From Azolla caroliniana (taxonomy: Eukaryota > Plantae > Polypodiophyta), in contig JBHGNT010000001.1 in NCBI GenBank assembly GCA_043228905.1, positions 15,004,001-15,068,000 on the forward strand: a stretch of DNA of 64,000 nt, given 5' to 3'. Within the stretch, counting starts at the first letter, position 1. Each line of letters opens with the position of its first letter. Of this stretch, positions 5,225-54,374 are shown in pieces. The position numbers and the translations under genes were made by a program. The notes beneath the pieces were generated by a model, which searched no databases, was not told the DNA's origin, and worked only from the letters and a program-made list of their open reading frames with translations.

Positions 5225-5610
5225 TGTTGAGCGGTAAGCTTAACCGGATCCGGATCGGCTGAATAAGCCTGAGCCGGATCGGTGAGCAGGTGAGCAAGCG
5301 AGGCGGTAAGCAAGTGAGCCGGTTAGCCGGATCAAGCAGTAACCAGAAGCCTAGTAGCAACCTAGACTACCTGGTAGTTAATGTCTCGTAGTTAGTGTCA
5401 GACGCTCGTGTGAGCATTGAAGTACACAGTACCTCTTAGGATGTGTATGAATAGTGTTGTTGAGCACGTTGTATGTATAGAGCTTTTTATAGAGTTGTTG
5501 ATAATAGATTTAAGTTGTTCTGTTGTTTCTCTGTCTCTTCTGCCTATTAATCTCTCTCTCTCTCTCTCTCTGTTGCTATCCGGCTAAGCCGGTTGTCTAA
5601 CGCTTCCGCA
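5225..5610 (+). repeat. 3' LTR of copia-1
   Basis: Starts TGTTGAG directly after the PPT and ends CTTCCGCA, like the related LTRs at 56121-56556 and 57338-57776. Confidence 0.8.
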
Positions 5611-5960
5611 CCTTCGTTTTCATGTACCATGTATTGATTTTCGATTTCAGGTGGCTCGTTCCTCCATATCCTAGAGTGTTTAACTTTACAAAGTTTTGCG
5701 AGATGAAGGAGGACTTTAACAACATATATAGTCTATCGTTAGAGGGTATTCACCTTGTTGTTCTAACATATAAATTGATTAGTGATGTCGATTGGTTGTC
5801 AGTTTATAAAGTTCCCAGAGTGAAAGGTAAGGTGAAGATCAAGAATGTACGACCGGAGCTGTATGACAACTGCATGAGGCTCCACTAGAAAGTACATCAA
5901 GAGATCCCGGCCAACAACAAGTTGTCTGGTCCATTTGCCAGACCTTTTGCATACGAGTAT

Positions 5961-9319: not shown

Positions 9320-12300
9320 GGTTTAAGGCGGAACCCATTCACCTTTTATCGTAAGACTTCCCTGGCCAGCGTGCCTTGTTCCGCTCCTAATATCCAGTAT
9401 GGGCATGTCCAGTGGAATCGTAACTTCCCTAGCATATGGCCCATGCGGGTTTGGAAAACCAGTACTGCTCGACCGACCGCGAAATCCTTTTCCCGTGCGT
9501 TCCGATGTCGATCCACAAACACTTTACACCGTTGTTGTTCCTGCTCCAACACAACCATGCTGTGTATGCGTTTTTCGCCGAGTTCGAGTAGCTGGTGGAG
9601 CTGTACCTCCTCCAACTTGGCTTCCGATAGTTGGTCTCGTACCTGAATGCGTAAACTGGGTATCTGAAACTCTACCGGCATCACGGCCTCCAGCCCAAAC
9701 GCTAGCCGAAACAATGTGCATTGTATGCTTGTTTTGTAGCTGGTTCTATACGCCCATAACGCACTCTATAATTTGGTATCCCAGTCCGTTCTATTCTCAT
9801 TGACGATTCTCTTTAAGATGGTTTACAACGTCTTGTTGGTGGATTCCGCTAACCCATTCGCCTGTGGATAATATGGCGTACTCTTCTTGTGGACTATAGC
9901 GTAATGATGTGTTAGTTCTCGAAGAACCGTATTGAGAAAGTGGCTCCCTTGGTCACTGATAAGCTCAATCGGACAGCCGAACCGATACCAAATGTGCTCG
10001 TAAAGGAATCTCGCTATGACGGCCACCGTATTTTCTCGTAGTGCCTTCGCTTCTACCCACTTGGTGCAATAATCTGTGGCTACCAATATGTATTTATTGC
10101 CCGTATGGGCCGTTGACGGTGTGAAGGGGCCCACAAAATCCAATCCCCACTTTTGGAAGGGGTATAACGGTAATACGGGTTGGTGTGGCATCCTTTCACC
10201 CTTCGTGGGCTGGCCCATCCGTTCACACAAATCCCACTTTCTATAATACTCGTATGCGTCCTTCTGTGTAGTCGGCCACCATATTTTCCGGGCTGTAACA
10301 TCGCTCGCGTAATGGCCGCCTGCCGTGCCGTAGTGAGCCTCCCGTAAGACTGCTTCTTTGTCATCCTAACGTACCCCATGTCGCCAAATGCCATCACTTC
10401 CTTTGTGATATAAAATTCCTTCTACCAGGCAGAAGTTACGGCTTCGGACAGCTAATTGTTTCTTCTCGTCCGTGCGTAATTGTGGTGGAGGTAGTCCCAT
10501 AGTAAAAAAGTATGTCATTTCCATAAGCCACCGGTCCGGAAAGGTCAATTCCGTTCTTTCTGCTAGTGTTGCAACCTGCTGAATGTCGGCGTCCGGAAAG
10601 TCGTCGTCGTCCTTCTGTACTGTTTCTCCATTATCGAGTCTGCTCAAAACATCTGCCATTGCGTGTTGCGTCCCCGGGCGGTGCTGAATTACAAAATCAA
10701 AATTCTTGAAGCAGCAGCATCCATCGCGCCAATTTCCCTGTCAGTGCTTGTTTCTCCACCAAATACAACAGTGCTAAATGTCCACGTAGAACGTGAATTT
10801 CCTCCCTAACTGATAATGCCGGAATTTATTGATGCTATAGATCATCCCTAACGCCTCCCGCTCTGTTGTGGAATAGTTACGCTCTGCCGTGGATAATTTG
10901 CGACTAGCGTAATACACCGGCTGGTACCAATTTGGTTCGGTGAGCTGCATTAGCGCACTTCCTATTGCTATGTCCGAGGCGTCTACGAACACGTGGAATG
11001 GCTTCGCCCAAACTGGTGGCCGTACGACGAGTGCCTGTGTGAGCATTATCTTAAGCGCATCATAGGCCTTGTCCTCCGTTGCGGTCCATTGGAAGGGAGT
11101 CTGATGCACGACAGCATGTAATGGTGTGGCGAAGTTCGCCAAGTATCGTATGATCCGACTATGTCGTCGTATTTGTCCTAAACACCGGCTAAGTGATTTC
11201 ACGTTTGTCGGAGTTTTGGCTTGCGTAATCGTGGAGATCTTGTTCGGATCGACCGCTATTCCATCCTTGCTGATTATATGGCCTAGGAGAGTCCCGCTGG
11301 TCACGCCGAAGGCACATTTCACGGGATTCAGGCTTAAGCGTGCGGTGTGGCAACGTTCCAAACACAATTGCAGATGCGTAAAATGGTCGATTGTTTTCCC
11401 ATATATCGCAAAGTCGTCTAAAAAAACTTGCATGAACGCCGGAATATATTCCCCAAAGATCTCCGTAATTGTCCGTTGAAATGTCGCCGACGCCGTCTTT
11501 AGCCCGAACATCATGACGACGGCCACATAGACTCCCCAGTCCGTGACAAATGTTGTCTTCTCTTGGTCATCGGGATGCATGCATACCTGGTTATACCCAC
11601 TAAAGCCATCTATAAAATTGTACATGTCATGTCTTGCGACGGCGTCCAGTACGCTATCGGTGAATGGTAAAGGGAATGCGTCCGTAATGGTTACGGCATT
11701 TAATTTTCGGTAATCCACGCATGCACGTATTTTACCATTTTTCTTTGGAACGACTACTATCGGGCTTAACCCTGTGGCTTGTTTAACTGGCCGTATGAAT
11801 CCTGCCTTTAGGAGTTTGTCAATTTCTTCTTTTACGGGGGTTGCGTAGTTCGGGTTCATGCGGTAGTGGAGCTGCTGAACGGGTTTTGCGTCGGTTGCTA
11901 AATTGATCTTATGTTGTAGAACTTCGGATCTAACCCCTTCATGTGCTCGTGAGCCTAGGCGAACACATATTTATATTTCTTGAGTAGTTCGATCATTGCG
12001 TCTCTCTGGGACGGCCTTAATTCCTTTGCAATGGAGAGAAAACAGGGTTCTGACGTCATACCCACGTTTACTTCTTCCAGGGCGGAGGCGGTGACTCGCC
12101 GTGAAATTTCCATTTCCCTCTCGAATGTTGCCCGTGCTCTGCTTAGTTCCAATATTGACTCCAGATTTGGTTCATACGCCTCATCGTTGAGGATAGTGGC
12201 CGTGGCATATTTTGTCGTGGTTGCGATGACGTCGATTTCGAACAACGGAATAATCCAAGGGTGCTCGTCCTGGTATGCCTCTAATTCTGCATCCTCCACC

Positions 12301-17129: not shown

Positions 17130-19568
17130 TCATTTTCTCATGTACAAACAAACCACACATCTTGGAAATGCACCAAGAAACTTAGGAAAAAATGGTTTGA
17201 TAAAGAATGTTGTGAAGCTCGAAAGTCCCTTATGGTTTTGGATGTAGTTAAGGATAAAGAGAATTACCAAAAGCACTTGCATGAGTATAAAAGGCTTATT
17301 CAATGAAAGAGAAGAATATGGGAAGTTACTCCACAATTTATCCAAATGCAAGAGAAAGCACATGCATGTACTAAATTTTGGGGAAATCTAAAGGGGAAAT
17401 GTGTTGAGAGTTATGATGACTGAACTCTTCACGACTTGTCTATGCATTGCAAGAATTTATATGAGTTATGTCTTGCTAGAAAGATGATGTGTTATGGTCC
17501 TCTTTCACATATGCCTCCTTTCTTTACAATTGAAGATATATGCATAGAACTTAAGAAATTGGGCTCTCGAAAGGCAAGCGATCTTCAATGTATATAGGTT
17601 GAAATGCTCAAATGGACGGGAAAGGAAGCACATGTATGGATAAACGATATGTTTAAGATGCATTGTAACATGGTATGATGTACGATTGGACTACAAATTG
17701 GATCAAACCTTTACATAAAGGTGGAAATGTAAATAATGTAAACAACTATCGTACCATCATGGTTGACTCATTAATGGCAAAACTGTTTGGATGTACAATG
17801 CAATCAAAGATAAGTGTATGGACTGAAAAAAATGGTAAGAGAGGTTATGGACAAGCTGGTTTTCGAAAACACCATAGCATCATTGATCACCTTATTACCC
17901 TTCGAGTATTAATGGAGGAAATCCGCCTTAGAGGTAAAGGTTTATATTGTTGCTTTGTACAGTTCAAGAAAGCTTTTGATGTGGTACCTCGGGAGCATAT
18001 TTGGAGGAGAATGGAAGAACTTGAGGTGCCAAGTGAATATATGCTTACAATTTCCCGAATTTATGAGAAGGTTATATGTTGTGTGTGCATGAGAGATAAA
18101 CTTTCAAATTTTTTCAAAAGCACTATTGGTATTAAGCAAGGACGCCCACTCTCACCAACACTATTTGGTCTATGCATTGATGAATTGGAAGAAATGGTTA
18201 CCAAGTTTGCAAAGGAAGAATGTGTTGAAGAAGTTGCCATTGGGAATGTTGTGATTATGCTTTTGCTATATGCAGGTGATGGAGTTCTTTTTGCAAATAC
18301 TTTAGGAGATGCACAAAAGCTTATGAAGGCATTGGAATTTTTTTGCATGCATACTAAAATAATTGTGTCAATAGCTCTAAAACAAAGATTATGCTTGTGG
18401 AGAGCCGAAAAAGATATAAACCATGCATTATGTACAACAATGAGCCACTTGAATGTGGGAAAGCTTCAAATATCTTGGCCTTGAAGTTCCTTCAAATCAT
18501 AGATGGAATGAATGTGCTACACGCCACTTAGAGGCGGGTAAGCCAACATACTATGCATTTGAGAACACACGCAATCTTTGAGATATTAAGTGTTGGGTCC
18601 TCAAGAAATATCTTTTCGACACTTTGGTGACACCAGTTCTTATCTATGGGGTGGAAGTATGGGGCGGTGGCATCCCTAAATCTATGTGGAAAGAGTTTGA
18701 AAATGTCCAAAAACATTTTCTTACAAAGTTTCTCCAAGTTAAGAATTAAATGCCCTACACTCTCCTCCTCCTTGAGACAGGATCGCTTCCCTTTGAGATC
18801 ATGGCCATGGAAAGGGTTGTTGAATACATGCTTCAGGTTCAAAAAAACCCCCTCACATCGATTTCCTAGAATTGCGTGGGAAGCAAGCAAAAAGATCCAA
18901 AAGATGCATAAAAGCAAAATTTTGTGTTCCGGTTGGATGCAAGCTATAGAAAAATGGTTTGGTAGATGGGATGAGAGACACTTGCTTCATGATGCATCAT
19001 TAGATTCCTCTGTAAATGAGGCCTTTTTGCAAAGCCAATGTATCATGACATGGGACAAATGTGGAGGCTCACGCTTCACACATTATACCACACATGTTGC
19101 ACGTAACCACAAAACCATATTCTTTGCGGAATGGGGAAATCGTACACATCGATACATGTTATAGCCCATACCGTTATCTGCCATTCGAACCATTGCTTCC
19201 ATGTGACTTAGCTCACATGCATTACGATGTGAGACAGGATGTTGGGGCACAAGTGATGAGAGTGATCGGCTATGCACACTTTGCCCTAAACAAGTTCGCG
19301 AGTTTGAGTATCACACTTTGATACAATGCTCTGCCTTTGATCATATTCGACCATGCTTTCCACATCTCTTTGATCGAGCCCAATCCTTGCATGAATTTCT
19401 TTCACAACCACAATGTGCACTCTCGATTGCAACATTCATTGGTAAAGTTCTTGAACATCGAGAGTCACTACTCACTTTCACACGTATCACATGAAATGTA
19501 ATATGGTTAGTCTCATAGGTCATATTTGACCTCCGAAGACAATAATATAATCTATCTATCTATCTATC
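17130..19568 (+). mobile_element. 5'-truncated non-LTR retrotransposon (LINE, RTE/RTEX-like)
   Basis: RT motifs NYRTIMV, QAGFRK, FKKAFD, GIKQG.PLSPTLF and LLYAGD (17675-18484); C-terminal RLCTLC..EYH..IQC zinc-finger-like motif; 3' tail of (CTAT)n. The clade call is tentative. Confidence 0.85.
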
Positions 19569-28708: not shown

Positions 28709-31700
28709 CAACCATTGGCACCATTTCTTTTCCTTCTATTTGGGAAAGATCTATCATATTTTCTTAGATCCTAGACGGCGGCCATCCAAGTGTCGAATAC
28801 AAGTGTATAATGGCCGTATTCACACTGTCCCTTTGGACAACCCAAGTTCGGGCTATTTCTGTAAATAGCATAAAGGACAGTTGCCCTAGGATAGTCACTA
28901 TATAAAGTGACTTTGTAACCTTTAGTGAAGGTTGGTTGTCATTTGTATCTGTTGTTATTAGAATATAACGTTTCCTTTGTGCCTCTCTCTCTCTCTCCCT
29001 CTGTGTCTATCTTGCTCGTGCATACATAGGTTCTTCTTCATCATGAATGTTGCTTGCACTTTCGCATTGACAGCCTTGTCCCCAACATTTGGTATTAGAG
29101 CGTTGGAGGTTCTTCAACCCGCTGCAGGCTGTCATCGCACAACACAACATTCTGTTTTCGTTTTCTTTGAAGAACAGAGAAGGGAGAAGAAAAACAAAAA
29201 GCTCGCATCTCATTGTGTTAAATCAAAAATTGGAGTAAGCTAGTTGGTTGTACTCTGTTCCTGTGATTGTAACCGATAGAGGGGAGCTCCTTGAGCAACA
29301 ACCTACCCAATCTTGCATCATTCGGTTAAACAACATCCGAATAGGTCACCGAACGCTATTCATCCACTTGATGTAACCACCCGCTGCAGATTGGTCTCTT
29401 GGCAACAACCACTTCGTGCTTCAATCGGTCGATCGACATTCAGGAGGATCAGTTGGATCCATACCTCTCATCGTTGCAATCATCCGAAGCAAAATCGGCC
29501 CAAACAATCGGTTTCGTGTAATCGGTATTCGGCATACAATCGGAAGCTAACCGGGCTCACTTCGACTCGGTAACATTCAAGAAGACCAGCCGGTTCTGTC
29601 CCGGAGTCACTCTGAGCGAGTTCAGCAACAAGTATCTGAAACCAAACCGACTCGGGTTCAAAACCGACTAGAACGATATCGGGTGAGCCGACCGGCTGCA
29701 CCCCTCTAAGGTTCGTAGTCAACTCCGAACTGAGTCTTACCAACCGAAACCGAAGCCGATGGCATCAACATTCGGCTCATCGGAGATGAGTGTAAGGAGG
29801 TTCGACGGTTAGAACTTCAACTTCTGGAAGGAACAAATGCAGGACTATCTCATAGTCAAGGGTCAGATAGACCCGATTGAGAATGAAAATTCTCCAGAAG
29901 CATTCAAGGCAAACGAGTGGCTAAAGCTAGACAGAATCGTCCGCGCCATGATTCGGATGCACTTGTCGGAGTCAATGTACTTCACAGTGCAATCATGCAC
30001 GACAACGTTTGAACTTTGGAAAACACTTTCAGAAACTTATGAAAAGAAGGTTGCCGCAACGAAGATGTATCTGATCCGGCGCCTCTACAACTTGCAGATG
30101 AAAGAATTTGATTCGGTTCAGGCACACCTCAATGAGTACGAAAGCATAAGCTCCCAAATCTCGTCTCAATGGACGGCAATCGAGGATGAACTCAGAGCAA
30201 TGATACTCATGAGTAGTCTCCCCTCTTCATGGGAAACTTTCATTAAAACCGCGTGCAATGCTTCAACAGCTGCCATTAAGTACTCCGAGGTCACGAGCGC
30301 AATCCTCACTGAAGCAGCTCGAAGAAAGTCTTTCGCCAAAGACTCGGCAGATGAAGCTTACGTAGTACATGGTTCGACCGACCGATCAAACAACCAGGGA
30401 AGAAGTTCTTCCCGACCGCCGAACAATCAGCGAAGCTGGAGCAAGTCCCGGGACAACCAAATCTGCAACTACTGCAAGAAACCGGGACACATCAAAGCCG
30501 ACTATCCGGCACTCAAAGAAAAAACCGACAAAGCTCAGAGAGTGGATCAGAAGAGTAGCTGGCATGAGGAGGTCAACTACGTCGGCTCTTCAACTGAAAT
30601 TTTGACGACCGACCCGAACATACTGTCCATAGAGAACCCAGTCGAATCAGAAGTTCTGCTTACAATTGAGGAATCGAGCACATGGCTCTTGGACTTGGGC
30701 GCATCTTATCATGTGACACCTCACCGATCACAGTTTCGGCAATACTTGGACTCGCACTCTGACTCAGTTCGAGTCGGCAACTCGCAACATTGTGCTATAA
30801 TTAGAATTGGCACCGTAGAGCTCAATCTTCCGGGAGGCTCTACACTCGTACTACACAACGTTCAACACGTTCCTGAGCTTTCAAGGCCCTTGATCTCAGT
30901 CGGACAACTTGACGAAGCCGGCATCCGTGCCAGATTCTCATCAAGAGGGTGGACACTCCACAAAGGGAACCTCTTGCTTGCTCGAGGACCGAAGGCACAC
31001 TCTTTGTACCCTTTATATGTCACACTCAAAGAGGGTGACTTATTTTTTCTTGATATCCCCGTGTCATCGTTATGGCACGGACGACTTGGACACCTCAACA
31101 AGGTCGGCATAACGCACCTATCCAGAGCCGGTTACATCCCCAAGCTCTCCTTCTCGGATCACCAATTCTGCAAGCATTGCTAATACGGAAAACAAGTAGC
31201 CGTATCACATCCGACATCAGCACCAAGAGAATCGAGTCCCCTCGATTTGGTTCACTCAGACGTTTGTGGCCCGATGCCACATCAGTCTCTCGGCGGTGCT
31301 TTGTACTTCATCAGTTAAATTGAAGACTCGACTCGGAAGGTGTGGGCTTATCCCATCCAAACCAAAGATCGGGTGTTCTCGATCTTCTCCGAATGGCTTA
31401 CAATGGTCGAAAATCAAACCGGTTGGAAACTGAAATGTCTCCGAACCGACAATGGAGGAGAATTCAAGTCTGAAGAATTCGTTAAATTTTGCCGCAAACA
31501 CGGCATTCGACGTGAATATACGGCATCCTTTAGTCTAGAGCAAAATCGAATTGCTGAACACATGAATCAGACGATTAAAGAATGCGTAGTATCCATGCTC
31601 CAACACTCCCGACTGTCGGATGGCTTCTGGGCGGAGGCTCTACTTACGGCAGTACACATAATAAATATGTCGCCAAGTAGACCTCTAGGACTTCAAATAC

Positions 31701-34410
31701 CTCAGGAAATATGGACTGGCAATAAGCCGAATTATGACAAACTGAGGATCTTCGGTTGCGAGGCATAAGCTCTCATTCCGAAAGAAGACCACCGGAAACT
31801 CGAACAAAGGTCAAGGAAATGTGTTTTTCTTGGATATGGACCCGATGGCGAGATCGGATACCACCTCTAGGACCCCGAGCACAGACAAATCGTCCAAAGT
31901 TCGGACGTCGTATTCAACGAGTCGGTTATGCATAAAACGGTCGAAAGGCCTATTGAAGTCAGAAGGGTAATATTTTCCGGAGTGCCAACCCTTCATGACG
32001 GCCCAGCCTACAACACGAGATCGGTTTCACAGGTAACTGACAACTCTCGCACTGAATCCACCGATTCGGCACAGCCGAATGGCTCCACTCCCGACCATCC
32101 GACATTGACACCCGGTGCAACTAGTCCAGTCATACCTCGCAGATCCAAGAGACTGTCACAACCTCCGGAGAGGTACTCTCCTGGAATTTTCTTTACCGAC
32201 GCCGGTGAACTGACGTCCTACGAAGAAGCATCGGCATCTGCCGATTTAGCCACATGGCATCTGGCGATGGAGTCGGAAATGCACTCCATTCAGGCAAACA
32301 AGACTTGGGACTTGGTTGAATTACCGAAGAATCGACGTGCTCTTCCATGTAAGTGGGTCTATCGACTAAAAGAGACGTCCGACTCGACCACCCCAAAGTA
32401 CAAGGCCAGATTAGTTGTGAAGGGATTTAGACAAGAATATGGCGTGGACTTCGACAAAATCTTTTCACCAGTGGTGAAAATGACGACCCTCCATTTCATG
32501 CTCGGCGTCGTGGCCGCCGACAACTTGGAGCTGATTTAGCTAGATGTAAAAACGACATTCCTCTACGGTGACCTAGAGGACGAAATCTATATGGAGCAAC
32601 CGAAAGGCTTTGTGGTATCCGGCCAGGAACATCTAGTCTGCCGACTCAGGAAGAGTTTATACGGCCTGAAACAAGCACCCCGACAGTGGTACAAGAAGTT
32701 CGACGACTTCATCCAGTTAGTCGGCTTCTCCAAGAGCGATGAGGACCATTGTCTCTTCACCAAAACAGCTCAAGACGGCTCTCCTGTCTTCTTCATCATC
32801 TATGTGGACGACATGCTACTCTTCGGTTGGCATGCCGGAGAGCTCACCGAACTCGTTCGACAACTGCGGTTGAAGTTTTCCATGAAGGACCTCGTTCTGG
32901 CAAGACACATACTTGGTATGAAGATTAGTCAGTATCGCGATACACGACAACTTTTCTTGTCTCAAACCGACTACATCGGACGTGTCTTAGAACGCTTCAA
33001 CATGCAATCGGCCAAGTCAGCTTCGACCCCGCTCCCCATTCACCTTCGGTTGTCTCAGCGAGATTGTCTGACACCCGGTCCGGAGGGGGAAGATATGAAG
33101 TCGGTACCGTATGCATTGGCAGTTGGCTCCCTCATGTACGCGATGGTCGTGACACGACCTGATATTTCTCACGCGGTAGGAGTCATCGGCAGATTCATGC
33201 ACAACCCCGGCCGATCGCACTAGAACGCAGTCAAGCATGTGTTCAGATATTTAGCTTGCACAAAAGACCACGCCATTCTTTTCGGCCTGAACTCAACCTT
33301 AAGCATAGTCGGTTACACCGACTCGGACTTCGCCGGTTGTGTGGACAGTCGGAAATCAACAACCGGATACTCTTTCAAATTCGACAATGAAGCAATCTCG
33401 TGGAAGTCAAAACTTCAGGAGTGCACAGCCACCTCAATGACCGAAGCGGAATATGTAGCTGCGTCCGACGCAGCAAAAGAAGCTTTATGGCTCGGTCAGC
33501 TGGCGCACACGTTTCGACAGGTCGACTCCGACTAGGCACCAATTGTCTACAGCGACAATGAGGGTGTTGTTGCTTTGTCAAAAACTCTTGTTCACCACAA
33601 CGCCTCTAAGCATATCGACGTTCGATATCACTTCGTTTGGGACTACGTCATTTCAAGGAAAATTGGTCTCGAGAAGATATCCACAACCGATAATGTCGCA
33701 GATGGAATGACCAAGTGTCTTTCGGCGGATCGTTTCCAGTCCCTTCGGCACCAGATGGGTGTAACGAAAAATCGGGCCGATTAAAGTCGAACACACAGCA
33801 TAGGATGGTTTCGGACCACCGACATCGGTTCTCTAAGGATCGGCTTCAGCTGTTCCGACTCGACCGGTTCGGTCCTCTGCCTCCGGATCTTGCCGACTCA
33901 GACAAAACCGATCTGTCCGATAAACCTTGTATATATACCTGTAATTCTTTAAGATAACCCATGTATACGCCCATTATGGGGGAGTGTCGAATACGAGTGT
34001 ATAATGGCCTTATTCACACTATCCCTTTGGACAGCCCAAGTTCGAGCTATTTCTGTAAATAGCATAAAGGGCAGTTGCCCTAGGATAGTCACTATATAAA
34101 GTGACTTTGTAACCTTTAGTGAAGGTTGGTTGTCATTTGTAACTGTTGCTATTAGAATATAATGTTTCCTTTGTGCCTCTCTCTCTCTCTCTCCCTCTAT
34201 GTCTATCTTGCTCGTGCATACACAGGTTCTTCTTCATCACGAATGTTGCTTGCACTTTCGCATTGACGGCCTTGTCCCCAACACCAAGCAATAGCCTTAC
34301 CTATTGCAAACTCGACAGTTCTTGATGCTAAGTTTGCAGATGACACTGCTCTTTATATTCATGGAGATGTTATTAATCTTGATTGGGTACAGAATGCTTT
34401 GCAGATATTC
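28709..34410 (+). pseudogene. Short L1-like RT fragment (28709-28790 plus 34289-34410) split by copia-3
   Basis: Joined across the insertion it reads PLAPFLF...AIQAIALP...DAKFADDTALY. Confidence 0.65.
28791..34283 (+). mobile_element. Full-length Ty1/copia element (copia-3), pseudogenised
   Basis: LTRs 28791-29087 and 33985-34283 (~13 substitutions by eye); TSD CCAAG; Met-type PBS TGGTATTAGAGC (29090-29101); PPT GGGGGAG; gag-PR-IN-RT-RH at ~29760-33784 with several stops. Confidence 0.96.
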
Positions 34411-45209: not shown

Positions 45210-48200
45210 TGTTGAAGACAAAGGTCGTCAATGCAGAAGATCAAATAGCATTCGATTCTTGTTGAGTACCTGCGTATGACAGTTTTAGAGATCGTGCACA
45301 GAGAGAGAGAGAGAGAGAGGAGGCACAAAAGACTCTTTCTATTCAATAGAAGCAATAATACAACCCAACCTTACAAAAGGGTTACAAGGTCACTATATAT
45401 AGTGACCGACTTAGGGCAACTACCATTTATGCTAATTACACAAATGGCCCAAACTTGATCTATACAAAGGGATAGTGTGAATACGTCCATTATACACTTG
45501 TATTCGACACTCCCCCGTAATGGGCGTATACATGGGTTATCTAAGATTACAGGTATAAACCTAGGTTCTCGGACATATCAGTTTTGTTCGAGTCGGCAGG
45601 GTCCGAAGGCAGAAGACCGGACTGGTCGGGTCGGAAGAGTTGAAGCCGATCATTAGGGAACTGATGTCGGTTGTCTGAAACCATCCTGCGCTGTGTCCGG
45701 CTCTAACCGGACTGGTTTGTCGTTACGCCCATCTGATGCCGAAGGGACCGAAAGCGGTCTGCCGAAAGACACTTGGTCATTCCATCTGCGACATTGTCGG
45801 TTGTGGATATTTTCTCTAGACCGATTTTCCCTGAAATGACGCAGTCCCGAACGAAGTGATATCGAACGTCGATATGCTTAGAGGCGTTGTGGTGAACCGG
45901 ATTTCTCGACAAGGCAACAGCACCTTGACTGTCGCTATAGACAACTGGAGCCGAGTCATGGTCGACTTGCCGAAACGTGTGCGCCAGCCGGCCGAGCCAC
46001 AAAGCTTCTTTTGCAGCGTCGGACGCAACTACATATTCTGCTTCGGTCGTTGAGGTCGCTGTGCACTCCTGAAGTTTCGACTTCCACGAAATTGCTCCAT
46101 TGCCAAATTTGAAACAGTATCCAGTTGTTGATTTCCGACTGTCTATACAGCCGGCGAAGTCCGAGTCGGTGTAACCGACTACGCCTGAGGTTGAGTTCGG
46201 ACCGAAAAGAATGCCGTGATCTTTTGTGCCAGCCAGATATTTGAACACATGCTTGACTGCGTTCCAATGCGATCGGCCAGGATTGTGCATAAATCTGCTA
46301 ACGACTCCTACGGCATGAGAGATATCAGGCCGTGTCACGACCATCAGGTACATAAGGGAGCCGACTGCCGGTGCATACGGTACCGACTTCATATCTTCCC
46401 CCTCCGGACCGGATGTCGGGCAGTCTCGCTGAGAGAGCCGAAGATTCATGGGGAGCGGGGTTGAAGCAGATTTGGCTGATTTCATGTTGAAGCGTTCCAA
46501 GACACGTCCGATATAGTCGGTCTGAGACAAAAAAAGATGTCGTTTATCGCGATGCCGACTAATCTTCATGCCAAGTATGTGACGTGCCGGACCGAGGTCC
46601 TTCATGGCAAACTTCAACCGCAATTGCCGAATGAGATCGGCAAGTTTGCCCGCGTGGCGTCCAGAAATTAGCATGTCGTCCACGTAAATGATGAGGAAGA
46701 TGGGTGATCCATCTTGAGCTGTGTTGGTAAAAAGACAATGGTCCTCATCGCTTTTTGAGAAGCCGATCGATTGGATGAAGTCGTCGAACTTCTTGTACCA
46801 TTGTCGCGGTGCCTGTTTGAGGCCGTATAGACTCTTCCTGAGTCAGCAGACTAGATGTTCTTGGCCAGTTGCCACGAAGCCTTTTGGCTGCTCCATATAA
46901 ATTTCCTCTTCAAGATCACCATGGAGGAAGGCTGTTTTGACATCTAGCTGAATCAGCTCCAAGTTGTCGGCTGCCACTACGCCGAGTAGAAAATGAAGGG
47001 TTGTCATTTTCACCACTGGTGAAAAAATCTCGCCGAAGTTGACGCCATATTCTTGTCGGAAGCCCTTCGCAACTAATCTGGCCTTGTACTTTGGGGTGGT
47101 CGAATCAGACGTCTCTTTTAGTCGATAAACCCACTTGCAAGGAAGAGCACGTCGATTCTTAGGTAATTCGACCAGATCCCAAGTCTTGTTTGCCCGAATG
47201 GAGTGCATTTCCGACTCCATCGCCAGATGCCAGGTGGCTGAATCGACAGATGTCGATGCTTCTTTGTAAGACGTCGGTTCGCCGACGTCGGTGAAGAAAA
47301 TTCCAGGAGAATACCTCTCCGGAGGTTGCGACAGTCTCTCGGATCGTCGGGGTATGATTGGACTGGTCGCATCGGGTATCGAGGTCGGATGGTCCGAAAG
47401 CGAATTATTCTGCTGTGCCGAGTCAGAGTTGTCCGAGTCGGTGGTGTAAGGTTCAGCTACCCGTGAAGCTGACCGTGTGTTAAGAGCGGGGCCTTCTTGA
47501 AGGGTCGGCACATCGGAAAATGTTACCCTTCGGACTTCGATCGGTTTTTCGACTGATGGATTCATAGCCGACTCGTTGAACACAACGTCCGAACTTCGAA
47601 CGATTTGTCTGCGTTCGGGGTCCCAGAGTCGGTATCCCATTTCGCCGTCTGATCCATATCCAAGGAAAATGCATTTCCTGGACCGAGGTGCAAGTTTTCG
47701 GCGATCATCTTTCGGAATAAGGGCGTACGCCTCGCATCCGAAGATCCTCAGCTTGTCGTAATTCGGCTTACTGCCGATCCATAGTTCCTGAGGAATTTGA
47801 AGTCCTAGAGGTCTGCTTGGCGACATATTGATTATGTGTACTGCCGTGAGTAGAGCCTTTGCCCAGAAGCCATCCGACAGTCCGGAGTGTTGGAGCATGG
47901 AAACTATCCGTTCTTGGATTGTCCGATTCATGCGTTCTGCAATCCCGTTTTGCTCCGGACTGTGTGGTGCCGTAAATTCACGTCGGATGCCGCGTGGTCG
48001 GCAGAATTTGACGAATTCTTCTGATTTGAACTCTCCCCCATTGTCGGTCCGAAGGCATTTCAGTTTTCGGTCAGTTTGATTTTCTACCATAGCGAGCCAA
48101 TCGGAGAAGATCGAGAAGACACGATCTTTGGTGCGAATTGGATAAGCCCACACCTTTCGAGTCGAATCGTCAATAAAACTGACGAAGTAAGAGGCACCGC

Positions 48201-50731
48201 CGAGAGACTGATGCGGCATTGGGCCACAGACGTCCGAGTGGACTAAATCGAGAGGTCTCGTTTCTCTTGGTGCTGATGTCGGGTGTGATGCGGCTGCTTG
48301 TTTGCCATACTGGCAATGTTCGCAGAATTGATGGTCCAAGAAGGAGAGTTTAGGGATGTATCCGGCTCTAGATAGGTGCGTAATGCCGGCCTTGCTGAGG
48401 TGTCCTAATCTTCTGTGCCATAGTGATGACACAGGAATATCCACCAAAAACAGGTTACCCTCTCTGAGCGTAACATGTAACGGATACAGTGAGTGTATCT
48501 TGGGTCCTCTAGCAAGCAGGAGGTTCCCCCTGTGGAGTGTCCACCCTCCCGAAGAAAAACCGGCACGAATGTCGTCTTCATCTAGTTGTCCGACTGAGAT
48601 CAATGGCCTTGAGAGCTCAGGTACATGTCGGACATTGTGAAGTACAAGTGTAGAGCCACCTGCAAGGTTGAGCTCTACTGTGCCGATTCCAATGATGTCA
48701 CAGTGTTGTGAGTTGCCGACTCGAACTGAGTCGGAGTGACGGATCGTATATTGCCGAAATTGGGATCGATGAGGAGTCACGTGAAATGACGCGCCCGAAT
48801 CTAAGAGCCATGTGCTCGATTCTTCAGTCGTGAGCAGAACTTCTGATCCGACTGGATTTTCGATTGATAGTATATTCGGGTCGTTTGGTAGCACATCAGC
48901 TGAGAAGCTGACGTAATTGATCTCCTCATGCCGGCCACTCTTCTTCTCTGATTTCTGAGACTTGTCGTTCTTGTTCTTGAGTGCGCGGCAGTCGGCTTTG
49001 ATGTGTCCGGGTTTCTTGCAATAGTTGCAGATTCGATTATCCCGTGACTGGCTCCGTCTTCGCTGATTGTTCGGCTGCCGTGAGGAATCTCTTCCTCGTA
49101 TGTTCGATCGTTCTGTCGAACCTTGTACTACATAAGCGTCGTCTGTTGAGTCTTTGGCGAAAGACTTTCTCCGAGCTGCTTCGGTCAGGATTGCGCTCGT
49201 GACTTCGGAGTATTTAACAGCCGTGGTTGACGCGTTGCACACGGTTGTGACGAAAGTTTCCCATGATGAGGGAAGGCTGCTCATGAGTATCATTGCTCTG
49301 AGTTCATCCTCGATTGCCGTCCCCTGAGATGAGATTTGGGAGCTTATGCTTTCGTACTCATTGAGATGTGCTTGAACCGAATCTGATTCTTTCATCCGCA
49401 AGTTGTAGAGGCGCCGGATCAGAAACATCTTTGTTGCAGCGACCTTCTTTTCGTAGGTGTCCGACAGTGTTTTCCACAGTTCGAATGCTGTCGTACACGA
49501 TTGCACCGTAAAGTATACCGATTCCGATAGGTGCATCCGAATCGTGGCGCGGACGATTCTGTCCAGCTTCTGCCACTCAATTGGTTTGTATCCTTCTGGA
49601 GGTTCTTCATTTTCGATGGGATCGATTTACCCCTTGACTATGAGATAGTCCTGCATTTGCTCCTTCCAGAAGTTGAAGTTCGATCCATCGAACTTTCGTA
49701 GACTCATTTCTGACGAGCCGGATGTTGATGCCATCAAATTTGGTTTCGGTTGACGAAGCTCGGTTCGGAGTTGACTACGAACCTTGTTGGAGTGCAGCCG
49801 GTTGGCTCACCCAATATCGTTCTAGTCGGATTTGAACCCGAGTCGGTTCGGCTTCGGATATATGTATTGTTGAACTTGCTCGAATTGACTCCGGTAACTT
49901 GAGGGACAGAACCGACTGGTCTTCCCGAATGTTGCCGAGTCGGAGTGAGCCCGGTTCGCTTCCGAATATATATGCCAAATACCGATTATTGAAACCGATT
50001 GTCTGGACCGATTCTGCTTCGGGTGACTGCAGCGACGAGAGAGACGGATCCAACTGATCCTCCCGAATGTCGATCAGCCGGATGAAGCACGAATTTGGGT
50101 TGTTGTCTTGAGACCGATCTGCACCGAGTGGTTACAATGAGCGGCGAGCAGCGTTTGATGACCTCTTCGGATGCCGTTTAACCGAGTGGAGCACGATCGT
50201 GTCAATGTTGCACAAGGGGATTTCACCTCGAGCGGTTACGATCACAAGGAACAGAGTACAACCGGTTGGCTTACTCCAAGCGAAGATAATCTAACGCGAT
50301 GAGATGCAAGCCTCGTTTTTCTTCTTCTTCTCTCTTCTTCGAATGACGCAAGAAACCGAATGCTGTGCAGGCTGAGACGACGGCCAACAGCGGGTTGAAG
50401 GACCGAATACTATGCAGGCTCTGATACCAAATGTTGAAGACAAAGGCCGTCAATGCGGAAGATCAAATAGCATTCGATTCTTGTTGAGTACCTGCGTATG
50501 ACAGTTTCAGAGATCGTGCACAGAGAGAGAGAGAGAGAGAGGAGGCACAAAAGACTCTTTCTATTCAATAGAAGCAATAATACAACCGAACCTTACAAAA
50601 GGGTTACAAGGTCACTATATATAGTGACCGACTTAGGGCAACCACCATTTATGCTAATTACACAAATGGCCCAAACTTGATCTATACAAAGGGACAGTGT
50701 GAATACGTCCATTATACACTTGTATTCGACA
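45210..50731 (-). mobile_element. Full-length young Ty1/copia element (copia-6, sister of copia-3)
   Basis: 300-bp LTRs 45210-45509 and 50432-50731 (6 substitutions by eye); TSD GGGAC; PBS TGGTATCAGAGC (50418-50429); PPT 45510-45516. Confidence 0.97.
45703..49734 (-). pseudogene. Copia-6 gag-pol polyprotein, one frame with two premature stops
   Basis: ATG at 49734 to the stop at 45703 in a single frame; TAA at 49627-49629 and TGA at 46843-46845; zinc knuckle, DSG protease, integrase, YVDD RT and RNase H all present. Confidence 0.93.
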
Positions 50732-51529: not shown

Positions 51530-51733
51530 AAAAGAGGTTATACGGATTGAAGCAAGTCCCCCGGCAATGGTACTGGAAGTTCGACTCCTTCATGATGGAT
51601 CAAGGGTACCACAAGACGCAAGCCGATCATTGCGTGTTTGTGAAGAAATTTGACGGAGGAGATTTCTTGATATTGCTCCTGTACGTGGATGACATGTTGA
51701 TCGCTGGATGAGACCAAGTCTAGATACGAATGT
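51530..51733 (+). repeat. Left copy of the 204-bp target duplication
   Basis: Identical to 54171-54374 except for 2 substitutions. Confidence 0.95.
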
Positions 51734-52099
51734 CGTGTATTAATAGCACAGGACTACACATGGTAGCCGTGTGTGCCCACCTCTCCCTCTTTAACTAATG
51801 CTCGGGACTACATGTTGTAGCCGGCTTATATGCACAATCCTTATCACTCCCCCTCTTCTCCATGATTTCTACAAAATTGTAAAAATGCCCCTCGTCTGTT
51901 TAACTAATTGTCACTCTACCCCTCTCCCTTTTCATGTTTTCACTCAAAACCCCCCATTTCTCTCTTCTTTCTCTTTCTCTTTTAATTTTTGTTACTCTTT
52001 CTCTATCTCTACCCTTCCCATTTTCTTTTCCGATATTTTACTCTACCCTCTCTCACCTCTATTCGTATACTCTACCCTTCCCCCTTTCATTTAAAATCA

Positions 52100-52470
52100 C
52101 ACTCTACCCCTCCATATACTTTTCTCAATTTTATTATACCCCTCCCTCTATTATTTTGACATTTTTAATTCCTACCCTTCCTCTCCTCAAAATATTGGAT
52201 ACCCCTCCCCTTCTTTTCTCCTAAATTTATTCTACCCCTCCATCTACTTTTCTCAATTTCATTATACCCCTCCCTCTATTACTTTGACATTTTTAATTCC
52301 TACCCTTCCTCTCCTCAAAATATTGGATACCCCTCCCCCTTTCTTTCTCCTAAAATTCATTCTACCCCTCCACCTACTTTTCTCAATTTCATTATACCCC
52401 TCCCTTTATTACTTTGACATTTTTCCTACCCTTCCTCTCCTCAAAATATTGGATACCCCTCCCCTTTTAC
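52100..52470. repeat. ~3 tandem units of ~127 bp
   Basis: AAAATATTGGATACCCCTCC recurs near 52189, 52317 and 52443. Confidence 0.85.
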
Positions 52471-52768
52471 TATTTTTTCCATACCCCTACCTCCTAGTTT
52501 CACTCATACCCCTATTTCCTCCTAGTTTCATTTATACCTCTCTCCTACACTTTTATTAAACCTAATCTTTAGATTATATTCACCCATTGCCCCTCTCCTC
52601 GATTTTTATATATTTTAAACATTACCCCTCCCCTTAACCTTTCTTTTTAGTAGCTTTATTTAGGGTTTGCCTTACGGCTTTGTGAAGAGTGCGAGTCGAT
52701 ATACCCTTTCTCTCTTCTCTAACTCCTACCTCTCTCTCTTTTCCTTTAGCTTTCTTACTTTTTATCCT

Positions 52769-52809
<41 letters not shown>

Positions 52810-53288
52810 ATTTCTCTTATCACAATATACCCTCTCTCTCTCTCTCTACGTTTCTCTTATCACAATATACCCTTTCATTTTCATATTCCTTTTTTAGTCT
52901 TCTACCCTCATTGATCTCTCGCCTTTTTTTTGCTTACCTTACCCCTCTTCCTTTTTTCTAAACCCTTAGCCTCCTCTTTGTAAGTCCCTTCGTTTTCTTT
53001 TTACTCTTTCTCCACCTTTCTATTTTTTTATATTTCTACCCTCACCCATGTTCTACTTTTTCTTACCCTACCCCTCCCATCCTCTTCCTAAATCTATAGC
53101 CTTCACCTTTATTTTCCCACACATGTCTCTCTCCCTTACCTCTCTCCTCTTTCCTTTCTCTCTCTTACTTTTTCTAGTTTACACACACATCTCTCTCCTC
53201 TCTCTCGCCTTTTGCTCTCTCTTAATTTTTTCACGTTTTCCCACTCTCTCTCCTCCTAGATCTACTCACTCCCCTTATGTCTACTCAT

Positions 53289-53324
<36 letters not shown>

Positions 53325-53597
53325 TCCCTTCTCATCATCTCACGTAAGCCTTGTTTCCCCCTCTCTCTTAATGCCCCTTATATTTCCTCACTTTTTACAT
53401 TTTATATCCTAAACTCTCCCTTTTCTTCTTATCCCTCCTTTTACAATATAACCTCATACCAAAGCCTTCCCCTTATCACATTAAAGCCCATAAAATCCTC
53501 TTCCTTCTTCTCCAAATCTTTCCCCCCCTTTCAATCACATCCATAAGCACAACCCCACTCCCTATTGTCATTTCTCTAAAGCCACTCCAAAAACTCC

Positions 53598-53606
53598 CTA
53601 TATAAA
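53598..53606 (+). promoter_or_regulatory. TATA-box-like motif just upstream of the hammerhead
   Basis: CTATATAAA. Confidence 0.45.
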
Positions 53607-53619
53607 CCTATCCACCCCG

Positions 53620-53680
53620 AATGGTCATGGTAGCACTGATGAGCCCCGTAGGGGGCGAAACTAGTTTGCTCATGACCATT
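53620..53680 (+). ncRNA. Minimal type I hammerhead ribozyme
   Basis: Stem I AATGGTCATG-(GT bulge)-AGCA / TGCT-CATGACCATT; core CTGATGA (53636-53642); stem II GCCCC-GTAG-GGGGC; GAAA (53657-53660); stem III AC-TA-GT inside the palindrome AAACTAGTTT; predicted cleavage after GUU at 53666. Confidence 0.9.
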
Positions 53681-53959
53681 ACCCATCGTATTGTAATTGT
53701 TTCCTTTTTTTAATGAAAATTAGTCTCCTTCTTAATCTCTCCCTCTTTCTAATCTAGACTATTTAGCTTATGGTTATGTTTTACCTTGTTTCTAATTTTA
53801 ATGTTAGTGATTAATCCCTCGTCTCTCTCTCTCTCTCTCTCTCCCTCCCCTTCCTCTATCTCTTATTATGCCTCACTTACACCAAGTTTGTCAAATGATT
53901 TGGGTGTGCTCAAATTATTCTTGGTGTTTCTTTTCTCTTTATCCCCTCTTGCACTTAAT

Positions 53960-54082
53960 CGTAAACCCTTTTACCCTCTAAACCCTAAGCCCAAAACAAA
54001 CACTAAACCCTAATTCTTAAACCCTAACCGTAACCCTAAACCTAAACCAAAACTCAAACCCTAATTCCTAAACCCTAAACCT
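53960..54082 (+). repeat. Cluster of degenerate plant telomere-like repeats / telo-boxes
   Basis: About five AAACCCTAA plus AACCCTAAA variants on the C-rich strand. Confidence 0.7.
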
Positions 54083-54170
54083 TTTTTTCTCTATAACTCT
54101 ACATCTTACATATTGCACCCACCGATTGCCTACCGTCCGCACTCCTTGTTTCGACTTCACGGTCCAATTG

Positions 54171-54374
54171 AAAAGAGGTTATACGGATTGAAGCAAGTCC
54201 CCTGGCAATGGTACTGGAAGTTCGACTCCTTCATGATGGATCAAGGGTACCACAAGACGCAAGCCGATCATTGCGTGTTTGTGAAGAAATTTGACGGAGG
54301 AGATTTCTTGATATTGCTCCTGTACGTGGATGACATGTTGATCGCTGGATGAGACCAAGTCAAGATACGAATGT
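54171..54374 (+). repeat. Right copy of the 204-bp target duplication
   Basis: Matches 51530-51733; the copia-5 RT continues after it. Confidence 0.95.

Follow-up and report, generated by a model that had tools for sequence, protein, structure and literature searches.

A 64,000-nucleotide stretch of Azolla caroliniana DNA, referred to here as the window, carries on its forward strand at 53620-53680 what is, judged from its sequence, a complete and intact type I hammerhead ribozyme. We consider it likely that this is a genuine hammerhead in the 3' module of an endonuclease-less, telomere-type family of Penelope-like elements of a land plant, and that the insert in which it sits is a gene-less, 5'-truncated member of that family, mobilized in trans. 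Elements of this kind are known but have barely been described in plants. The features of the insert and of its target site are collected in Table 1.

Table 1. Features of the ribozyme-bearing insert and its flanks (positions in the window)
Feature	Positions	Strand	Basis
Left copy of the 204-bp target-site duplication, in copia RT (YVDDML region)	51530-51733	+	99% identical to 54171-54374; translation matches RVT_2 123-175
Inserted non-coding element, 2437 bp	51734-54170	+	Boundaries from aligning both duplicated flanks
Twin hairpins, GGACTAC..GTAGCC (51751-51768) and GGGACTAC..GTAGCC (51804-51822)	51751-51822	+	Family landmark near the 5' end
Three tandem copies of a ~128-nt unit in the element body	52103-52475	+	Repeat search; self-BLAST 94%
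TATATAA box, 36 nt upstream of core C3	53600-53606	+	Conserved spacing among relatives
Type I hammerhead ribozyme	53620-53680	+	Sequence reading, pair-by-pair script check, fold z-score, shuffles, family alignment
Degenerate C-strand telomere repeats (CCCTAAA-like) on the ribozyme strand	53960-54080	+	Heptamer counts
3'-terminal motif CGCACTCCTTGT (54138-54149), hairpin GAC (54153-54155)/GTC (54162-54164) and element end	54138-54170	+	Comparison with family ends
Right copy of the 204-bp target-site duplication	54171-54374	+	Alignment of duplicated flanks

The hammerhead and its predicted fold

An earlier, sequence-only reading of this region had described complete core nucleotides, a 5-bp stem II and a 14-bp stem I with a 2-nt bulge, and a script check of each pair found all of these where that reading had placed them. 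The outer part of stem I pairs 53620-53629 with 53671-53680 and the inner part pairs 53632-53635 with 53667-53670, which makes 14 standard pairs, interrupted by a bulged GU at 53630-53631. The CUGAUGA core occupies 53636-53642 and GAAA 53657-53660, so that C3 U4 G5 A6 N7 G8 A9, G12 A13 A14, the A15.1-U16.1 pair (A53660 with U53665) and H17 are all present. Stem II is the 5-bp GCCCC/GGGGC (53643-53647 and 53652-53656), closed by a GUAG loop. The 10-nt palindrome AAACTAGTTT (53658-53667) supplies helix III, and G16.2, U16.1 and U17 are found at 53664-53666; since U17 is nucleotide 53666, the predicted cut falls between 53666 and 53667. The palindrome, the GUU triplet and the cut site of the sequence-only reading are thus upheld, but its 2-bp stem III is not, as a 2-nt loop cannot close in the monomer. 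Three helices surround the core and helix I is the open one; helix III amounts in the monomer to the single A15.1-U16.1 pair with the loop CUAG, the alternative being a 6-bp intermolecular helix.

A match to the pattern CTGATGAG..CGAAAC is found at one place in the window, whereas 100 shuffles produced none, and the 65-nt ribozyme stretch has a folding z of -6.35. At the gathering score, Rfam (clan CL00010) gave no hammerhead match in the window. Its best match in evalue mode is a forced alignment to Hammerhead_3 (type III), with 23.5 bits against a threshold of 48.5, and the evalue scan of the whole window otherwise returned chance-level matches only. This sole Rfam match is what might be said for a type III hammerhead from an angiosperm-like LTR retrozyme, a reading to which, together with that of a chance match, we give practically no credence: the alignment disrupts stems I and III and falls 25 bits short of the threshold, helix I is the open helix in every relative described below, and the element is without LTRs. 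Chance is contradicted both by the shuffles and by the family evidence. The ribozyme is not a chance match, because about 30 distinct plant relatives carry compensatory changes in stems I and II.

In the energy model, the monomer ground state (-30.6 kcal/mol) is an inactive fold in which core bases are paired, and the active monomer fold without helix III has -26.6. A domain-swapped double hammerhead with the 6-bp ACUAGU helix reaches -58.6, and two inactive monomers lie lower, at -61.2. These values, like the lack of an Rfam match at the gathering score, count against the preferred explanation. A lone monomer would, on this model, probably cleave poorly, in agreement with the published finding that hammerheads of the Penelope-like type cleave weakly and as dimers (PMC4209133). 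The ribozyme would then work mainly as a double hammerhead through its ACUAGU palindrome, acting on multimeric transcripts of head-to-tail arrays; we infer this because relatives are found in head-to-tail arrays, in which two ribozymes share a transcript. One Penelope-like hammerhead has been reported to require its protein for cleavage and to be dispensable for insertion in vitro (PMC11167929).

The insert and its target site

The element interrupts the RT of a copia element, and the two copies of the flanking 204-bp duplication differ at 2 positions. This 1% divergence suggests that the insertion was a recent event. The duplication is very long for any retroelement, and it begins in an A-run. 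The insert is strongly biased in composition (T 991, C 815, A 481, G 150), with 74% C+T on the + strand and a GC skew of -0.72. It holds low-complexity ORFs but no credible ORF, and self-BLAST detected no second copy within the window; the claim that this is a non-coding insertion present here as a single copy therefore stands. Repeat search and self-BLAST revealed no LTRs or terminal direct repeats within the element, and the element end has no poly(A) tail.

The hammerhead lies near the 3' end of the element, on the same strand as the reverse-complement telomere repeats, of which 53950-54085 contains 35 heptamers matching the C strand and 0 matching the G strand. The terminal ~90 nt that follow the telomere block end in CGCACTCCTTGT and a small hairpin, and the 3' end of the element falls within 6 nt of that hairpin, as do other ends of the family. 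In full non-coding units (those of L069, L026, L004, L035 and L017, among others), ~230 nt of 5' sequence run from the previous unit's 3' motif to the twin hairpins and resemble the start of the coding elements; the twin hairpins lie ~236-315 nt past the previous unit's 3' motif in L026, L069, L004, L008, L017, L035 and others. The window copy begins 17 nt before the first hairpin and lacks the 5' region of full units, and so it is 5'-truncated.

The combination seen here, of a 3' end that is exact, a truncated 5' end and a duplicated target, is the signature of target-primed reverse transcription. In the mechanism that we propose, a reverse transcriptase supplied in trans would copy the element RNA, starting at the 3' motif; copying would halt short of the 5' end, which would leave the truncation, and the insert would become fixed between breaks in the copia RT staggered by 204 bp. 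The mobilizing enzyme would be a Penelope-like RT: the element has no gene, and its 3' motif is common to RT-encoding relatives, and mobilization in trans by such an enzyme is the simplest reading of the two. A non-autonomous, trans-mobilized ribozyme retroelement family of Penelope type had also been proposed by the sequence-only reading, and it is supported by the ORF-less element and by a module held in common with elements that encode a Penelope-like RT. The enzyme, being endonuclease-less, presumably used pre-existing nicks for the staggered breaks. The location of the copy counts against this explanation: chromosome ends, with attachment to telomere repeats, are where one expects Penelope-like elements that have no endonuclease, and the window copy is internal, within a copia RT. 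Further, an RT-encoding member is absent from the window itself: no Penelope-like RT was found there, and the RVT_1 ORF at 17675-18484 belongs to a LINE, its RT carrying a YAGD motif.

That LINE RT, with another in one of the related loci (L080), raises the alternative that a LINE enzyme mobilized the element, as such enzymes do SINEs and processed pseudogenes. The first-strand nick site would be T-rich on the bottom strand, the duplication beginning with AAAA at 51530. We find this very improbable, given that the element ends without poly(A) and that it stops at the motif which its Penelope-like, RT-encoding relatives conserve. The usual target duplications of LINEs are also far shorter than 204 bp.

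It is very improbable, in our judgment, that the copia RT itself generated the insert and the duplication in one step, by switching template to a co-packaged hammerhead-element RNA and back again 204 nt upstream. The duplicated sequence is indeed internal copia RT, and its two copies are 99% identical, as a double switch would have it; random switch points, however, are unlikely to yield the exact family 3' terminus (no more than 6 nt from the hairpin, as at 26 other ends), and a 5' truncation combined with an exact 3' end is what target-primed reverse transcription leaves.

The window as a whole is a nest of retroelements (17675-19164, 10774-11859, 29837-33223 and 45703-49536), in which a LINE RT is accompanied by an RT/RNase H of gypsy type and by two or more further copia elements, among them one whose gag-pol frame is open over 897 aa. 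To named angiosperm proteins, the copia polyprotein is only about 42% identical.

Relatives and covariation of the stems

Relatives were collected from public metagenome contigs with a pattern of the core and palindrome of the window copy, yielding 112 loci. The core and the ACTAGT palindrome are constant among them by design of the search, and independent evidence comes only from the stems, the TATA box and the neighboring sequence. Half of the loci (56 of 112) are plant DNA closely related to the window, from one assembly series (ERZ1034...). One of them, L020, matches the window copy at 95% over 1.1 kb, with no difference in the ribozyme, and since it differs downstream it is another copy. 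Five further loci (L004, L022, L026, L035 and L069) are 80-85% identical to the window element, and positions 54116-54164 are 90% identical to L017, L062, L085, L098, L099 and L102; overall, related copies range from 68 to 95% identity. Copies of 51734-54170, and their linkage to a Penelope-type RT or a GIY-YIG ORF, were what the sequence-only reading had looked to as a check: such copies exist and a Penelope-like RT is linked to them, but GIY-YIG is absent from the partner.

Among the 56 plant loci there are 27 distinct stem contexts and 30 distinct 70-nt variants. Every stem context has a proximal stem I of 3-5 bp, an internal loop, a distal stem I of 6-10 bp and a stem II of 4-6 bp. The sequence of distal stem I shows compensatory change between subfamilies, and at one pair of stem II, 21 sequences have U-A and 13 have C-G. 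In a model-fitted family alignment (A3), 68.8% of cells were paired, compared with 59.3% after shuffling (the observed value was reached by 0 of 500 shuffles) and 36-43% in slid versions. In this CM-fitted alignment, distal stem I was out of register between subfamilies, with 49% of cells paired, and we therefore used duplex energies calculated per sequence: stem I arms paired with their own partners average -14.7 kcal/mol, compared with -9.1 for arms combined across families. Decayed copies of the hammerhead are also present (L018:5743, L022:212 and L072:9491). In L018, a single RT ORF is followed by two hammerhead modules (5486-5557 and 5743-5814) at a spacing of 257 nt; the core of the second is mutated (CTTAAGA), which makes it a decayed tandem duplicate.

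Helix III is not fixed at ACUAGU. In L026 (4695-4769, - strand) and L116 (4105-4174, + strand), ACAUGU replaces it, which is again palindromic, as would be needed for helix III to form in a dimer.

Several observations on individual loci are set down here in their own right. A tRNA-like sequence (L020:1440-1530) lies directly past the 3' end of the L020 copy. L019 provides a second case of internal insertion into copia: on its reverse strand (~600-900, counted in ribozyme orientation), a coding element of the family, truncated at its 5' end, interrupts a copia RT near RVT_2 1-70. No duplication is visible there, since its 3' end is followed by another unit. Thirty-four JAAUYA01 contigs (L002, L003, L005 and 31 further) come from a second, unrelated organism and hold a many-copy, non-coding hammerhead family with the same ACUAGU helix III, a CCCA/UGGG stem I, no telomere repeats and a GC content of 39%; this is probably an animal family of Penelope type. 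An IMG/VR contig, found in a scan of viral contigs, has a complete hammerhead with an 11-bp helix III (L001:845-935), which is of bacterial/phage type and unrelated to the plant family.

A conserved 3' module

The TATA box that the sequence-only reading had seen just upstream of the ribozyme is a conserved feature of the family and not a chance occurrence. TATATAA stands at -36 to -39 from core C3 in 30 of 33 distinct upstream contexts from diverged subfamilies, in surroundings whose sequence has diverged. Repeats upstream of the box in L073 and L100 start ~43 nt before it, which makes the box part of the element, and it is best read as the family promoter. Transcription might start ~26-35 nt past the box, within the 5' arm of stem I, and a transcript from there might carry a weakened ribozyme at its 5' side and a complete one at its 3' side.

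Downstream of the ribozyme come CGCACTCCTTGT and a short hairpin, at a distance of 170-230 nt in the compact subfamilies and of 350-1300 nt in others. Across 26 3' ends of coding and non-coding subfamilies the motif hardly varies, and the hairpin shows a G-C to A-U exchange in 4 of the 26. The order TATA box, hammerhead, tail and CGCACTCCTTGT is common to the non-coding elements and to those with two ORFs.

Reverse transcriptase-encoding partners

In many loci, an ORF1 of ~750-900 aa and an ORF2 of ~660 aa lie on the same strand, with the hammerhead 250-400 nt past ORF2. Units are arranged head to tail, and the next unit begins directly past the 3' motif. ORF2 has a weak Pfam match to RVT_1, with the motifs LPKLHK and RYIDD visible. 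Pfam searches of ORF1 and ORF2 from L018, L019, L063, L072, L078 and L112 found no GIY-YIG, APE or REL domain, nor do the nearest plant homologues of ORF2 have PF01541. The database relatives of ORF2 that are likewise endonuclease-less come from Cryptomeria, which scores slightly above Selaginella, from Selaginella (39% identity, E 5e-111) and from Ginkgo. More distant relatives, at ~30% identity, are RTs fused to GIY-YIG, i.e., classical Penelope-like elements. Language-model neighbors of ORF2 belong to clusters in which Rotifera and Chordata are abundant and which share its domain set, and a PDB sequence search with the family RT gave no match. By these sequence comparisons, the partner ORF2 is a Penelope-like RT without an endonuclease.

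For ORF1 (L018, L019, L072, L078 and L112), Pfam gave no match; its overlap with ORF2, 12-80 nt long, suggests frameshifting or reinitiation. In several loci the ORF1 region contains telomere-like repeats.

The homologous locus in Cryptomeria japonica (L116, BSEH01000784.1) was found through its RT and not through the ribozyme pattern. A type I hammerhead lies 405 nt past the RT ORF, with the stem I layout of the family and the palindrome ACAUGU, and a further RT gene follows in tandem. Between the RT ORF and the hammerhead is a 5S rRNA-like stretch (L116:3767-3865; 32.9 bits against a gathering score of 38), which may be a 5S fragment captured in the 3' untranslated region.

Telomere heptamers on the ribozyme strand of the 56 plant loci are overwhelmingly of the C-strand type (2396, against 80 of the G-strand type). 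A telomere block ~85-90 nt before the 3' end, as in the window copy, is found also in L020, L069, L004, L043, L030 and L109. In L007 the 3' motif abuts perfect (CCCTAAA)n that continues up to the contig end, and in L043, L030, L109, L027 and L020 the 3' motif is followed by telomere repeats and then by the last 60-85 nt of another unit. Junctions between the 3' motif and telomere repeats are what priming on G-rich chromosome ends predicts, and the arrangement fits published endonuclease-deficient Penelope-like elements (PMC8557442, PMC6431247).

Arrays and the question of a retrozyme cycle

Some contigs have identical terminal repeats, as tandem arrays would give, with units of 1841 nt (L035) and 6118 nt (L112), and successive units occur within L069 and L099. 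The tandem copies elsewhere that the sequence-only reading had called for are thus provided by relatives in head-to-tail arrays; for these the tandem organization is inferred, and the window copy itself is solo. Target duplications around other copies have to be read with the shortness of the contigs in mind, and tandem arrays mimic flanking repeats.

Such arrays, along with a palindromic helix III that favors dimers, would suit a plant counterpart of the animal non-LTR retrozymes, in which paired hammerheads would cut array transcripts, the unit RNAs would be ligated into circles to serve as templates, and the window copy would be one product. A 2026 preprint that derives animal non-LTR retrozymes from Penelope-like pLTRs (bioRxiv 10.64898/2026.07.22.740005) lends this some plausibility. 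Against it stand the size of the units, 1.8-6 kb compared with a few hundred bases in animal retrozymes, and the structure of the window copy, whose exact linear end at the 3' motif and 5' truncation fit priming from a linear 3' end as well or better. We regard such a cycle as unlikely, and prefer target-primed insertion of a linear element RNA by a Penelope-like RT.

Comparison with known elements

The closest published systems are the endonuclease-deficient Penelope-like elements (Coprina-type) of Selaginella moellendorffii, with type I hammerheads in their terminal repeats (Gladyshev and Arkhipova 2007; Cervera and de la Pena 2014, PMC4209133); a 2025 review cites Selaginella as the plant example, and essentially the sole one, of telomere-associated Penelope-like elements (PMC12477314). 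Like the present family, they have a plant host, an endonuclease-less RT of the same family and a type I hammerhead whose helix III is short and palindromic, and their sense strand bears C-strand telomere repeats. The window element differs in having no ORF, in its internal location in copia and in its 204-bp duplication. The link of the Selaginella elements to a ribozyme rests on PMC4209133, and the one Selaginella homologue locus that we fetched has no hammerhead within 9.7 kb. The conserved TATA-ribozyme spacing and the CGCACTCCTTGT end motif do not appear in the available part of the published Selaginella description.

In the Athena elements and Terminons of bdelloid rotifers, a hammerhead is likewise accompanied by reverse-complement telomere repeats (Arkhipova et al. 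2017; PMC6431247, PMC8557442). These and the plant family agree in the near-3' position of the hammerhead, the orientation of the telomere repeats, the head-to-tail chains and an RT protein without an endonuclease. They differ in telomere repeat type and host kingdom, and also in spacing: in Athena/Terminons the telomere repeats come immediately downstream of the ribozyme, whereas in the plant family 170-300 nt lie between the two and a terminal segment of ~90 nt follows the block.

Gene-less derivatives of Penelope-like elements have been reported as MRC1 and other non-autonomous Chlamys elements in Chlamydomonas (PMC8557442) and as the animal non-LTR retrozymes (bioRxiv 10.64898/2026.07.22.740005). 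Like the plant units, they keep the 3' part of an autonomous Penelope-like element and form head-to-tail multicopy insertions. The retained part includes the hammerhead in the animal retrozymes, while most Chlamys elements are without canonical hammerheads. The plant gene-less units differ from both in their size, 1.8-2.4 kb, and in having a partner without an endonuclease.

Another set of features separates the window element from the angiosperm LTR retrozymes. Those elements have LTRs of ~350 bp, a PBS, a PPT and 4-bp duplications, and they are mobilized by Ty3/gypsy elements. They are also non-autonomous and hammerhead-bearing, with type III ribozymes in the LTRs (Cervera et al. 2016, PMC4918200). 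The window element has a type I ribozyme, no terminal direct repeats and a 204-bp duplication.

Implications

Four things are new here. The first is a diversified Penelope-like hammerhead family in another land plant, in which the ribozyme, the TATA box and the 3' motif form one conserved module. The second is the mobilization of gene-less, 1.8-2.4-kb derivatives of that family. The third is a recent internal insertion with an unusually long duplication of 204 bp despite a partner without an endonuclease, and the fourth is a conifer RT homologue locus with the same kind of ribozyme. The locus gives constructs and coordinates for testing the role of the hammerhead in the life cycle of Penelope-like elements, and it bears on how endonuclease-less elements enter internal DNA. 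More broadly, we put forward tentatively, as possible and still well short of likely, that non-angiosperm land plants have a second, independent retrozyme system made of large, gene-less derivatives of telomere-type Penelope-like elements. Such a system would combine a promoter at a fixed distance from the ribozyme with a dimer-dependent hammerhead, would process arrays, perhaps to circular RNAs, and, as the 204-bp duplication suggests, might invade internal DNA without an endonuclease by priming at widely staggered breaks.
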